A stretch of DNA of 63,651 nt, filler included, from Octopus bimaculoides (taxonomy: Eukaryota): the NCBI RefSeq assembly GCF_001194135.2. It is 7 parts of 7 records of this genome, joined end to end, with 100 filler letters (N's around TTAATTAATTAA, not from the genome) between each part and the next. Parts side by side here need not be neighbours in the genome. Positions count along the whole stretch, not along the records: positions 51,227 to 56,178 come from NW_026415538.1; 6 more parts are not named here. The stretch is one strand, 5' to 3'. Below the pieces are notes generated by a model. That model was given only the letters and a program-made list of their open reading frames with translations, ran no database searches and was not told the DNA's origin. A program made the translations under genes and the position numbers. Below are positions 50,466 through 56,178 of the stretch, piece after piece; within the stretch, counting starts at the first letter, position 1; the number at the start of each line of letters is the position of its first letter.

Positions 50466-51281
50466 TTTCTCCAAATTTTGATTCCTGATAAACTCCTGTT
50501 TATCTTTGTCTTTGCCTATAATTTATGAGCATAGTATTTTTGCCCATGTTTAAATATAAGTAATATATCAGTAGTATTTTGGATATTTTTATCCCTTAGA
50601 CAGTTATTTTAAACTCTAACTCAATTAACCTTATGTATATATATGAATATATATAACATATATACTCCTGATGGAGTAAGAGGAATTCTTGGAATGAAGA
50701 CGTCATCCCCTTTTGCACATCCAGAAAGAATGGTAGCCTCGATAATGTGTGACATCATTTTCTAAATAATGCTCATCTGTTATGTTCGGGTTAAAATTTC
50801 ATCAACATCAAAAATATATGAATTTTCATGGGAGTTATGGCCGTTATGCAAAGAATATAATTTCCAAATTTCATAAAGAACCATTCAGTACTTTTGACGT
50901 AGTTTTGGATAATAAAACAAATGACTAATGTGTGTGTTTGTGTGCATGTGTATGTGTGTGTGATGGGTGTATATCTGTATAGATATCTGTATGCATGTAT
51001 ATATGTATATATGTGTACATATTACATGTACATCTATATATATATATATAGCAATCTCGTTGTAATTCTTCCAATGATTAACTCTGGACTTGTTTCTCTG
51101 GATTGTTAATGTTAACAGTAGTGTACNNNNNNNNNNNNNNNNNNNNNNNNNNNNNNNNNNNNNNNNNNNNTTAATTAATTAANNNNNNNNNNNNNNNNNN
51201 NNNNNNNNNNNNNNNNNNNNNNNNNNAGAATGACAAAGACAGCAAGAACACGATGGAAGGAAATCAAACTGTATATCTTAC

Positions 51282-51530
51282 TGATATTTTCCACTTTGAG
51301 AAGTGCTCCCGGCAGCTTTAAAATGGAGACGAGATCCTCTGCCTTTCGACCTTGGGAGTCTTTCAGTGATTTTTTAATCCCTTTCCTCAGCAACAGTTTG
51401 ACAACTTTTATGTAAAACTGAACATCTTCAACTTCAGTTTGTACCAAGGAATGCAATAGAGTCTCGTTTCTGGCGTTCACCACATTGATGTTCTTGTTGT
51501 TAAGGCCGTAATCTAAAGCATCAAGAGAAC
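51282..51530 (-). CDS. Exon D of TPR-like/ankyrin-repeat gene (ankyrin repeat)
   Basis: Acceptor tttatttcttgcccccag|; donor ATCA|gtaaga; 249 nt, phase 1-1. Encodes SLDALDYGLNNKNINVVNARNETLLHSLV...FYIKVVKLLLRKGIKKSLKDSQGRKAEDL, with the ankyrin pattern N..N..ETLLH...VVKLLL..G.....KD..G. Confidence 0.82.
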
Positions 51531-53163
51531 CTGGGGGCAAGAAATAAACAAAGAATAGATTTATTTAAATGTATATTTTTTGCTTTTATTTGTATTTGGT
51601 AGAAATGAGAGAGTGACTCAAAAGCTGAGAGTTCCATGCGTTGACACTTATCAAAGTAGTCACAAATCCAGATGTTATAAATTCATATACCAATGATAAT
51701 CTTATTTATGATTTGTTCCAGAACTATCCAGGAAAATACCATTATCACCAGTATATGGGACTTATAACCCCAGGATTTCTAACTAGTTTCGTAAGTGCTA
51801 ACACAAAATTCTTGGCCCTTGAAGCACTCTACTATTTTTGTTAAATATCGGTTTCAAATTTTGGCACAAGGCCAGCAATTCTAGAGGAAGTGGTTCAGTC
51901 CATTACACCAACTCCAGTGCTCAACTGGTACATATTTTCTGAACCCCAGAGGAATAAAAGGGCAAAGCGACGAAGCATTTTGTCACGTATTGATAAGTTT
52001 ACTAGGATAAGTTTACCTTAATAATTATAATAATAATAATTGTTTTAAAATAAGCTGAAGGCCTTGAATTTGGGGTGAAGAGTTAGTTGATTCTATCAAG
52101 CACAATATTTGACTGATGCTTTCTTTTGTCAACATCAGAAAGATGGAAAAGAAAATTTTCAAAAGTAATTAATGTTTGTAATACAGATACAAGAGCAGAA
52201 ATTTGGGGACAATGGGCCAGAATCAACTGCATTCTTTGGCTGCTACTTTATTTTATCAACTTCAGTGGCCCTGAAAAGATGGGGGAGCAAGATGAGCTTG
52301 GCAGGATTTGAACTCAGAACATATAGAGCCAGAAGAAATATTGCAATGCATTTTCTCAAATGCTCAAACAATTCTAAATTGGTTTCTCACACAGAAATTT
52401 GAAGGAAGATTTAGTTAATGAAATCCGTCCTGGTACTCAATTGGTGCCTTATTGACCCCTGAAGGAGGAAAGGTAATATTATCCTCAATAATGGAACTAA
52501 TTTCCTACCCAGTTACTATGGAGAATGCTTACAGCTATTGGAGTAAGAGGAAAAGAGTGAAAAAATAGCTGCACAAATGATGGGAGAGGCAGAAGAGCCT
52601 GGTTATGGAGCAAGTGAGAGGAATAAAGCTAGGAGCCAGGAGGAGATGATAAGCAGTGATTTGACCAGCTCTGCTGAACCACCAGTGAGATGGTTCAGGG
52701 TGGTTGAAACACTTGACAATTGCTGGATACCATGTGATGACTTCCCTGGTCAAACCAACATTCACTGAAGATGAATGAAGAAGGAAAAAAACATTTTTTA
52801 AATGTTAAGAGTAAAATCATTTTCCCAAAAGTATCAGGAGAAATGTCACATGGAATGCATTGCAGTGGCTACCAACATGGCCACAGGCCTACAACAATGG
52901 AAATCAGCCAAAGAATAAAATTAAAAGAACCATCTAATCCGAAAGACTCCTTGAATACTTCCAACATCCTGATTATCTTCTTGGATGCTCATGCTCTACA
53001 TCCCAAACATTCTCTATGAAAATGGTACCATCATCTTTATAATATTTATAAACAAGAAAAATTATTAAACAAAAAGACTTAAAAAGATAGCAAAAATTGA
53101 TAAAAAAAAAAAAGCTAACAACAAAAACAAGAGCAAATACAGAAGAAATATATTCTATGTTAC

Positions 53164-53478
53164 CAATATTTAGTGTCAGTTGCAGGATTGTGTGAATTTT
53201 CACAGCACTATCATGTCCCGAGAGAAGACCATTCCTCAGAAGATTCATTAATAATTCAAGAGCAGATGATCTATTGATTTCATTAGATTGTCTTGATTTC
53301 AATAAAGTTGAAATATTCATGTGGGAAGCATTGAATTTTCTAAGTCGTGGTTTTGTTCCACCGAGAAAAAAGTATAGCATTGGCCAGGATTTAGAAGATC
53401 TAGATTTTTCCAGAAGAAATTTGTTCACCTCATCTTCTTCCATTTTATGTACATTTTCTAAAATGGCATCAATATCTG
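53164..53478 (-). CDS. Exon C of TPR-like/ankyrin-repeat gene
   Basis: Acceptor tttttcttgcag|cag (NAGNAG); donor ATTG|gtaaca; 315 nt, phase 1-1. Open frame (A)DIDAILENVHKMEEDEVNKFLLEK...ALELLMNLLRNGLLSGHDSAVKIHTILQLTLNI(G). Confidence 0.78.
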
Positions 53479-53516
53479 CTGCAAGAAAAACAATAAAATA
53501 TCAAACATGTTTGTAG

Positions 53517-53550
<34 letters not shown>

Positions 53551-53663
53551 GGGTAAATGAATTTCGAGAAACACAATAGACATCTCAGCTAGCAGTAGCA
53601 GCAAACTGGCATAAAAGAAGAGCACAGCAGTTCCAGGACAGAAAGACACAAGTCCCAACTTAC

Positions 53664-53769
53664 CATTATCAAACTGTTTAATTGTACGAGAGTGCAGAGT
53701 TTTCTCCAGGAAATCAAGGAAGACAAAAGTATCCTGGGTTGGTTCCGACGGGGCAGTCTTTGCTCTAGA
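53664..53769 (-). CDS. Exon B of TPR-like/ankyrin-repeat gene
   Basis: Long poly-T tract then cccaag| acceptor; donor AATG|gtaagt; 106 nt, phase 0 to phase 1. Open frame SRAKTAPSEPTQDTFVFLDFLEKTLHSRTIKQFDN. It bridges the phases of exons A and C exactly. Confidence 0.75.
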
Positions 53770-53829
53770 CTTGGGAAAAAAAAAAAAGAAAAAAAAATTT
53801 AATTAAAAATTTGATATTTAAAAAAAATA

Positions 53830-54520
53830 TTTAATAATTAGGATTGAAAAAGGAGAGATCCCAACAATGACTATGATGGCCATGACATGGGCCCTGAAGG
53901 AAGGAGTAAGCAGAAAAGACCTAAGAGTATCTAAAGAAGAACTGTTGAAAACAAGAGGCAGATCAGTGAATGGAGAATGTGGAGACCCAGGTTCGAATCA
54001 CAGTCGTAGACAGGCTAGCATGGAGAAGGAGAAATGGTAGGCAAGTGTGTGGCCTGAAAACAACAGGAAGGTGGTCTGGACATGAACCAGGAGCTATAAC
54101 GGAAAATGAGAACTACAGGACCTTGTGGGACTTCCCAATAAAGACTGACCACACTAATGAAGCAAGAAGACCAAATATGATTGTAGAGGACTAAACAAAC
54201 AATGTAATATCATAGATTTTGCAATTCGCTCTGAGAGAAGAGTTGATAGAAAAGAAATGGGAGAAAACTGAGAAATACCAGGATGAAGGCTAAGAGCTGA
54301 GGAGAGTGTGGCAGACCAAGACAACAATTATTCCTGTAGGAAATGGAGCATTTGGCACAACACCCAAAATGCTACTTAAAAGACTGAAAGAGATTAGAGC
54401 TGAAACTCGCATTGTCCAAGTACAGAAAAGTACTGTTCTATATTCTGCAAGAATCCTAAGAAAGATTCTTGAGGTTTGAGGAAACTTGTCAACAAACCTC
54501 AAGATAAAATAACTGACAAC
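53830..54520 (+). mobile_element. Decayed RLE-type LINE 3' portion inside intron A-B of the TPR/ANK gene (antisense)
   Basis: LWDFPIKTDHTNEARRPNMIV, EKTEKYQD, IIPVGNGAFGTTPK, QKSTVLYSARILRKILEV-stop, with stops and frameshifts. Confidence 0.75.
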
Positions 54521-54587
54521 TAAATTAGCATAGGAGGAGGAGGAGGATTAAAAAGAAGTAAATCAATGAGAGACGAAAAAAACTTAC

Positions 54588-54754
54588 AGCATATAAGCCC
54601 TGATAATATTTGCTTAGGTCTTTTACTTGATGACAATACAGCAAAAGGTTAGCACCTCTCCTACACTGAACGGTTGCAAATTCATAGTTCTTCTTATTAA
54701 TAGCAGATTCAATGTTCTGTCTCACACGGGCCATTTCTATACCAGCACATGTAA
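54588..54754 (-). CDS. Exon A of TPR-like/ankyrin-repeat gene (TPR-like helices)
   Basis: Minus-strand acceptor ttcttcattatag| and donor GCT|gtaagt; 167 nt, phase 1 to phase 0. Reads TCAGIEMARVRQNIESAINKKNYEFATVQCRRGANLLLYCHQVKDLSKYYQGLYA. Spliced to exon B it gives LYASRAK, like the TPR LYSNRA motif. Confidence 0.7.
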
Positions 54755-54899
54755 CTATAATGAAGAATTGGATTGGTAAAATAAAATCAATATAAATAAT
54801 TCTGATATGTGTGTATACATAAATATATAATCATCATCATCATTTAGCATCTGTTGTCCATGCTGTTGGCTGGTTTGACCAAGGCTGGCAAGCTGAACC

Positions 54900-56178
54900 A
54901 GACCCCAGTCTGATTTGGCATGTTTGAAGGTCATGCTTCACCACCTCGTCCCATGTCTTCCTGGGTCTACCTCTTCTACAGGTTCCCTCCANNNNNNNNN
55001 NNNNNNNNNNNNNNNNNNNNNNNNNNNNNNNNNNNNNNNNNNNNNNNNNNNNNNNNNNNNNNNNNNNNNNNNNNNNNNNNNNNNNNNNNNNNNNNNNNNN
55101 NNNNNNNNNNNNNNNNNNNNNNNNNNNNNNNNNNNNNNNNNNNNNNNNNNNNNNNNNNNNNNNNNNNNNNNNNNNNNNNNNNNNNNNNNNNNNNNNNNNN
55201 NNNNNNNNNNNNNNNNNNNNNNNNNNNNNNNNNNNNNNNNNNNNNNNNNNNNNNNNNNNNNNNNNNNNNNNNNNNNNNNNNNNNNNNNNNNNNNNNNNNN
55301 NNNNNNNNNNNNNNNNNNNNNNNNNNNNNNNNNNNNNNNNNNNNNNNNNNNNNNNNNNNNNNNNNNNNNNNNNNNGAGGCTCTTTGTTGACAGCAAAGGT
55401 AGAAGCTTTCTAAACTTTGCCCATTTTTATTCTAGCAGCAATGCTCTCAGAGCATCCACTTCCACTGCTAACTTGGTCACTTAGATAACGGAAGCTATCA
55501 ACTACTTCTAGATATCTCCATTGGCATTTCATAGAGTCAATTTTCTGTGTATTCCTACTGTTTACTGTATCTGTGCATCTGCCACACACAAAGACTATTT
55601 TCCCTGTTAACCTTCCTCTAATAATGCTGCCCCTCTTATGTGTCTGTGGCTTGCACTGGGTACACCTTATGGAGTTTCTACCTACACCTTTTCTACAGAC
55701 CAAGCAGAGTCATCTACCTGAAGGGATTTGTGATTTGTCTGCCTTTCTACTTACTAAGACTTTGGTTTTTTTGCTAGATTGACTCTAAAGCCCTTTGACT
55801 CCAGACCTTGCTTCCACTCATGGAATTTTTCCTCCAGCTCTGTTAGTGATTCGGCTATAAGAAGAAGGTCATCAGCATAGAGGAGCTCCCGGGGGATNNN
55901 NNNNNNNNNNNNNNNNNNNNNNNNNNNNNNNGGGGGGGGGGGGGGCAGCCCATCCTAAATTCCTGTCATTGGAGAATTATGACAAACAAAGAGGAAGTTG
56001 AGATTTGAACCTTAATGAACTCCTACTTTCTACCCCGAATTCATCTATTGCCAAGCCTCGCTTTACTGACAGCATTACTGTACATGGCTTGTATAGCTAT
56101 CACCAGCCACTCCTCTCTTCCTAACCACCATATAAGGGAGCAGGGAATCTTGTCAAAGACTCTCTCCAAGTCAACAAA
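54900..56178 (-). mobile_element. RTE-like LINE reverse-transcriptase remnant (gapped)
   Basis: PRELLYADDLLLIAESLTELE at about 55897-55835, then VCRKGVGRNSIRCTQC (C-rich insert) and LEVVDSFRYLSDQVSSGSGCSESIAARI. Confidence 0.8.

Follow-up and report, generated by a model that had tools for sequence, protein, structure and literature searches.

An unplaced Octopus bimaculoides scaffold carries four exons predicted to belong to a large ankyrin and UvrD-type helicase gene with a TRANK1-like layout

We analyzed a 63,651-nucleotide stretch of DNA from Octopus bimaculoides (the window, to which all positions refer unless otherwise stated), in which a preliminary description had proposed a hidden four-exon gene related to TRANK1 on the minus strand of positions 51282-54754. 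Judged from sequence, the four minus-strand segments are real coding exons, and they are best read, by homology with a protein of Argonauta hians and by analogy with TRANK1, as a genuine and correctly spliced fragment of a large gene that encodes ankyrin-like repeats and a UvrD-type helicase. We consider it probable that they are the middle of this octopod gene, whose helicase belongs to superfamily 1A (SF1A) and whose layout is of the TRANK1 type, and that the gene was split by fragmentation of the O. bimaculoides assembly, the scaffold studied here holding only the four exons and the preceding part lying in a second predicted protein, A0A0L8IFM0. The features of the scaffold piece are as follows.

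51227-56178: scaffold piece, the reverse complement of the entire unplaced 4,952-bp O. bimaculoides scaffold LGKD02120676.1 of assembly GCA_001194135.2.
54588..54754, minus strand: exon 1, 167 nt, phase 1 to 0; acceptor tcattatAG, donor GTAAGT; encodes (x)TCAGIEMARV...QGLYA.
53664..53769, minus strand: exon 2, 106 nt, phase 0 to 1; acceptor (T)n-cccaAG, donor GTAAGT.
53164..53478, minus strand: exon 3, 315 nt, phase 1 to 1; acceptor tttcttgcAG, donor GTAACA.
51282..51530, minus strand: exon 4, 249 nt, phase 1 to 1; acceptor cttgcccccAG, donor GTAAGA.
53770..54587, minus strand: intron 1, 818 nt.
53479..53663, minus strand: intron 2, 185 nt.
51531..53163, minus strand: intron 3, 1,633 nt.
51227..51281, minus strand: first part of the next intron, ended by the scaffold edge; A. 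hians shares its donor at 51281.
54755..56178, minus strand: part of the upstream intron, with a retrotransposon remnant and two N gaps.

Spliced together, the four exons (167+106+315+249 = 837 nt) read as a single stop-free frame of 278 codons, with phases, in order, of 1-0, 0-1, 1-1 and 1-1. Each is preceded by a pyrimidine-rich tract and AG, and the donors are GTAAG, GTAAG, GTAAC and GTAAG. The scaffold has a G+C content of 38%, and its piece of the window contains two N gaps (54992-55375 and 55898-55931). The AG and GT boundaries, the phases and the 837-nt open frame are those given in the preliminary description, which had also rightly remarked that one exon, here exon 2, is missing from a mechanical list of open reading frames (ORFs) and that the other three appear there only as partial ORFs. 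As a control for chance, in-phase chains of up to four exons, bounded by GTAA donors and pyrimidine-rich AG acceptors, were compared with those in 200 first-order Markov simulations. The longest in-phase chain measured 837 nt on the minus strand versus 227 nt on the plus strand; the simulated longest chain was 371 +/- 164 nt, and 837 nt was reached in 1 of the 200 simulations. Chance alone is an unlikely source of the exon chain.

The evidence that carries the exon structure comes from A. hians. An exhaustive phmmer search against 1.84 billion representative proteins returned seven matches, only one of which was strong: the 2,896-residue hypothetical protein GAB1610784.1 (P0003; E 3.2e-50), aligned over its residues 625-909 with 39-41% identity. 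No strong relatives of this region were detected outside octopods among these proteins. When the exact splice junctions of the A. hians gene (L001, 44.6 kb) were located, the four window exons were found to correspond to residues 613-903, and their counterparts, of 167, 133, 321 and 252 nt (window exons: 167, 106, 315 and 249 nt), stand in the same order and have identical phases. The counterpart of exon 1 lies at L001:11475-11641, and intron positions and phases are conserved at all five boundaries. The donor that follows exon 4 is likewise homologous in the two species, with a split codon beginning with A and then gtaaga, which bears out the terminal donor proposed at 51282/51281. Nothing in intron 3 resembles the A. 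hians protein.

Each exon was also tested separately against its A. hians counterpart, with 500 shuffles per exon, and in all four comparisons no shuffle did as well (0/500). Exon 3 (48/105 identical, z = 21.6), exon 4 (z = 18.2) and exon 1 (21/55 identical, z = 13.6) gave the highest scores, and exon 2, the least conserved, gave z = 3.9 with 6/35 identical. Because A. hians has kept the order, lengths and phases of the exons as well as the protein sequence, we regard the exon structure as settled. The notion that the four segments are a chance chain of open stretches between AG and GT in AT-rich noncoding DNA, which can claim the one simulation in 200 that reached 837 nt, is refuted by this same conservation; with the shuffle tests and the simulation control also counting against it, we rejected it, and its probability is close to nil. 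The characterization of the gene as fast-diverging is plausible: identity is about 40% between two octopods, in a region with no other detectable relative.

The gene is not hidden, as had been supposed, since the same splices are already modeled in RefSeq. The entry XP_014789804.1 (P0001; "uncharacterized protein LOC106883348, partial", 286 residues) comes from the same scaffold, has the identical three introns and is 100% identical to the four-exon product over 272 residues. The two differ at both ends. The RefSeq model starts at an internal ATG at 54734, ignoring the acceptor at 54755/54754, and at its other end it continues past the 51281 donor as far as the scaffold edge, which adds 14 intronic residues with the tail SKIYSLISFHRVLA. 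Since the final donor is kept at the homologous place in A. hians, this C-terminal tail is intron read-through; SKIYSLISFHRVLA has no real similarity to the A. hians protein beyond the donor. We set aside as spurious a match to P0005, a reverse-transcriptase-repeat protein of a sea turtle, since the match is short and repeated and takes in the intronic tail.

A second O. bimaculoides protein, the 163-residue A0A0L8IFM0 (P0002), bears on the opposite end. Its terminus, TCAGIEMARVRQNIESAINKNNYEFATVK, overlaps exon 1 (window 54666-54761) with two differences among 29 residues (K to N and Q to K), and the overlap takes in six codons before the exon-1 ATG. The upstream part of A0A0L8IFM0 is colinear with residues 542-637 of the A. 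hians protein, just upstream of the region represented in the window; residues 1-131 have no match in the scaffold piece, and no exon upstream of exon 1 was found in its readable sequence. Because A0A0L8IFM0 carries codons before the ATG and its upstream part is colinear with A. hians, exon 1 is an internal exon that opens at its acceptor. The same overlap indicates that another scaffold, haplotype or recent duplicate also carries exon 1. The Octopus protein so far consists of fragments of 286 and 163 residues, compared with 2,896 residues for the A. hians homolog. Our analysis amends the RefSeq model at its start and its end, and it ties two orphan Octopus fragments to what is probably one large ankyrin and UvrD-helicase gene; the gene fragment itself was already annotated, and the meaning of these results is mostly limited to annotation.

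What the fragment encodes is clearest for exon 4, the product of which resembles about two divergent ankyrin repeats with a core at roughly 51325-51501. It matches the Pfam family Ank_2 (PF12796) at E 0.016, designed ankyrin proteins in the PDB at E 6e-4, and five bona fide ankyrin proteins at E values from 1.5e-5 to 1e-3 (library-wide, 1.84e9 proteins). A structure model of exon 4, with a predicted local distance difference test (pLDDT) score of 61.6 overall and about 70 in the core, retrieved ankyrin proteins for all of its top 50 PDB matches in a fold search (TMq 0.50-0.67, root-mean-square deviation 2.4-4.8 A over 54-82 columns). The ankyrin character is thus weak in each test and consistent across tests, and since the Pfam cut-off is not reached, membership in the ankyrin fold class rests on the protein-library matches together with the fold search. 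In sequence and predicted fold, exon 4 is like canonical ankyrin proteins (the Pfam Ank clan; DARPins, the tankyrase ARC and the TRPV4 ARD), from which it differs in that its first repeat has an insertion between its two helices. The ankyrin part of the original proposal is supported for exon 4.

The remainder of the fragment is predicted to be helical. Exon 3 encodes a helical region with a conserved KSWPM(L/I)YF motif, and an AlphaFold model of the whole 286-residue product shows exons 1-3 as helical at a pLDDT of 54.8, too poor to classify; matches in a fold search with this model were non-significant. Neither Pfam, nor a sequence search of the PDB, nor the fold search assigned exons 1-3 to a family. 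The description of this part as TPR-like found no support: no TPR appeared at Pfam E <= 10, in the PDB sequence search or among the fold matches.

The full-length homolog suggests what lies beyond the scaffold. The A. hians protein consists, in order, of a Pro/Thr/Ser-rich low-complexity N terminus, a helical and ankyrin-like region, acidic tandem repeats and a helicase. Helicase motifs begin at about residue 2180 and include a P-loop (Walker-A) GRSGTGKST, IDEAHD, TGDMAQ and VALTRAR. Pfam matched UvrD-helicase (E 8e-4), UvrD_C_2 and, at exactly the cut-off score of 25.6 bits, UvrD_C; PADLOC matched the UvrD-type helicase GajB (E 3e-6), and NCBIfam matched RecB (E 1.8e-5). A word-indexed search with the helicase part found only two eukaryotic helicases: P0010, a protein from an ENA contig, and P0011, a Pelomyxa "PcrA". 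Searched against the PDB, a single sequence of the A. hians helicase region returned nothing, and a profile built from this region, P0010 and P0011 matched PcrA (2.8e-7) and UvrD (1.4e-6), as well as AddA, HelD and FBH1. The A. hians helicase shares the motifs of the UvrD/PcrA/Rep group of SF1A helicases and is 28-29% identical to P0010 (E 1e-92) and P0011 (E 4e-41). On these matches, the C-terminal region can be assigned to the SF1A helicases of the UvrD/PcrA type; the window, unlike members of that group, encodes only the noncatalytic upstream region. The helicase is followed by a TPR-like tail of about 100 residues with a faint TPR_2 match (E 0.11). When the protein was cut into eight overlapping pieces and compared with Pfam, its N-terminal half yielded no informative match, and a word-indexed search with all 2,896 residues found only the protein itself, probably because low-complexity words swamped the search.

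Between the two halves, residues ~1330-1970 of the A. hians protein (L001 24246-25373 and 29704-31074) are made up of tandem acidic repeats, with MGDESEA(T/A)(V/L)Q units and Asp/Cys-rich low complexity. Just N-terminal of the helicase, residues ~1975-2075 and the corresponding region of P0010 (~125-245) have a common pattern, W-x-V-x-(F/C)-T … LY..(C/K)L….RIIW … I.VW.V. This region of the A. hians protein has no Pfam match; it may resemble small domains of the RelE/ParE type.

How does this gene relate to TRANK1? Human TRANK1 has about 2,925 residues with Ank and UvrD-like domains, and it is a genome-wide association locus for bipolar disorder. We take the TRANK1 layout to be that of a protein of some 2,900 residues in which ankyrin repeats precede a UvrD-like helicase. 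The A. hians homolog, with 2,896 residues, an ankyrin-like region upstream, an SF1 helicase of the UvrD/PcrA type near the C terminus and a TPR-like tail, is similar in layout. Three word-indexed searches and the exhaustive search, in libraries that contain no TRANK1 sequence, gave no protein of that name. It differs from TRANK1 in its long Pro/Thr-rich and acidic repeat regions, and the window stretch differs in having no TPR signal. The fragment was originally placed in the N-terminal architecture of a TRANK1-like protein; it maps instead to residues ~613-903 of the homolog. The expectation that the gene continues into a UvrD-like helicase is supported by the A. hians gene model; in Octopus, only 55 nt of scaffold remain beyond exon 4. 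If the relationship is true, the family, of obscure function even in humans, gains a very divergent member in octopods, but a five-kilobase fragment cannot advance the question of function. The function of TRANK1 has been described as unknown (bioRxiv 10.1101/192815; PMC3463515), and TRANK1 has been listed among interferon-stimulated genes, including those of a co-expression module from Aplysia, a mollusc (PMC8195618). Our literature search found no paper on this locus or its accessions, on TRANK1 in octopus, or on TRANK1 together with UvrD.

Several observations weigh against assigning the four exons to the middle of a single ankyrin and helicase gene. The helicase is seen only in the A. hians gene model, the Octopus scaffold ending before any such region, and within that model one predicted splice (residues 1595/1596; intron L001 25374-29703) in acidic low-complexity sequence is all that connects the ankyrin half with the helicase half. 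The Ank_2 match scores 16.2 bits, below the Pfam gathering cut-off of 27.3, and the structure models are of low confidence, with pLDDT values of 54.8 for the 286-residue product and 61.6 for exon 4. Lastly, the copy of exon 1 in A0A0L8IFM0, with 2 of 29 residues different, means that the scaffold could be a redundant haplotig or a partial duplicate.

This last point leads to the idea that the exons are real but lie in a redundant or decaying copy, either a haplotig of a placed gene or a partial duplicate among retrotransposon debris, and are not independently functional. Besides the nearly identical exon 1, the persistence of the scaffold as an unplaced 4,952-bp contig in GCA_001194135.2 and the decayed retroelement sequence ~100 nt upstream of exon 1 and within intron 1 would fit such a copy. 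However, the 278 codons contain no stop or frameshift and 8/8 splice signals are intact; moreover, no other annotated Octopus protein with exons 2-4 was found, which fits one gene on two scaffolds better than two copies. We judge a redundant copy unlikely, while granting it a real chance. It is also conceivable that the four exons belong to a stand-alone gene of ankyrin and helical repeats with no helicase, and that the 2,896-residue A. hians protein is an annotation fusion of neighboring genes. Its two halves are indeed linked by one predicted intron between acidic low-complexity exons, and no second protein that combines this N-terminal region with a helicase came up in word-indexed searches. 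For a chance fusion to match both the layout that we attribute to TRANK1 and a size of ~2,900 residues would nevertheless be a coincidence, and all parts of the A. hians protein lie on the same strand, in order, within 44.6 kb. We find an annotation fusion quite improbable.

The reading closest to the preliminary description, in which the fragment is the TPR and ankyrin N terminus of a lineage-expanded, immune-related TRANK1 paralog, can draw on the ankyrin signal in exon 4, the helicase of the homolog, the fast divergence between octopods (~40% identity) and the listing of TRANK1 as an interferon-stimulated gene, also in the Aplysia module (PMC8195618). Several results speak against it: the window product gives no TPR signal, the fragment corresponds to homolog residues ~613-903 and not to the N terminus, and lineage expansion found no counterpart in the data, as the databases searched, whose cephalopod coverage is unstated, contain one near-identical extra exon 1 (in A0A0L8IFM0) and no series of paralogs. 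As a whole, we regard this reading as distinctly unlikely.

If the four exons do form the middle of an ankyrin and SF1A helicase gene, as we prefer, the encoded stretch may act as a protein-binding scaffold in which about two ankyrin repeats follow helical sequence of no known family. Such a region would position or regulate the ATP-driven nucleic-acid helicase located toward the C terminus of that polypeptide. A more speculative possibility, in our estimate decidedly improbable, is that the ankyrin and helical region is an octopod-restricted, rapidly evolving recognition module mounted on an ancient helicase core of the UvrD type that Amoebozoa also possess. The protein would then be an innate-immune nucleic-acid sensor of the TRANK1 class, the target-binding part of which is caught in an arms race. 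The ~40% identity between two octopods, the lack of relatives of this region elsewhere and the conservation of the helicase are compatible with this idea.

The introns contain traces of mobile elements and repeats. The upstream intron (window 54900-56178, minus strand) contains a decayed retrotransposon of the non-long-terminal-repeat class, which is oriented like the gene and of which the 3′ half remains. This remnant retains the reverse-transcriptase YADD motif (Pfam RVT_1, E 1.7e-4), a Cys-rich stretch with weak PHD/C1 matches and a tail of RGRPRKTWDEVV, after which a short (GAT)n run lies ~100 nt ahead of the exon-1 acceptor; frameshifts, stops and the two N gaps interrupt the remnant. Intron 1 contains, on the plus strand and antisense to the gene (window 53970-54480), a stop-broken ORF that reads …RTLWDFPIKTDHTNEARRPNMIVED…GNGAFGTTPKMLLKRLKEI…; it has no Pfam match and appears to be a retroelement remnant. 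A perfect (TG)15.5 microsatellite occupies 53518-53548 in intron 2, 40 nt upstream of the exon-3 acceptor. An Rfam match to SCARNA7 (21.5 bits versus a cut-off of 65) sits on this microsatellite and is spurious, and scans of the scaffold piece for tRNAs (ARAGORN) and Rfam families otherwise yielded nothing real. In intron 3 (window 52300-52315, minus strand), the motif GAGTTCAAATCCTGCC resembles a tRNA B-box and may mark the remnant of a short interspersed element; ARAGORN detected no tRNA in the piece.

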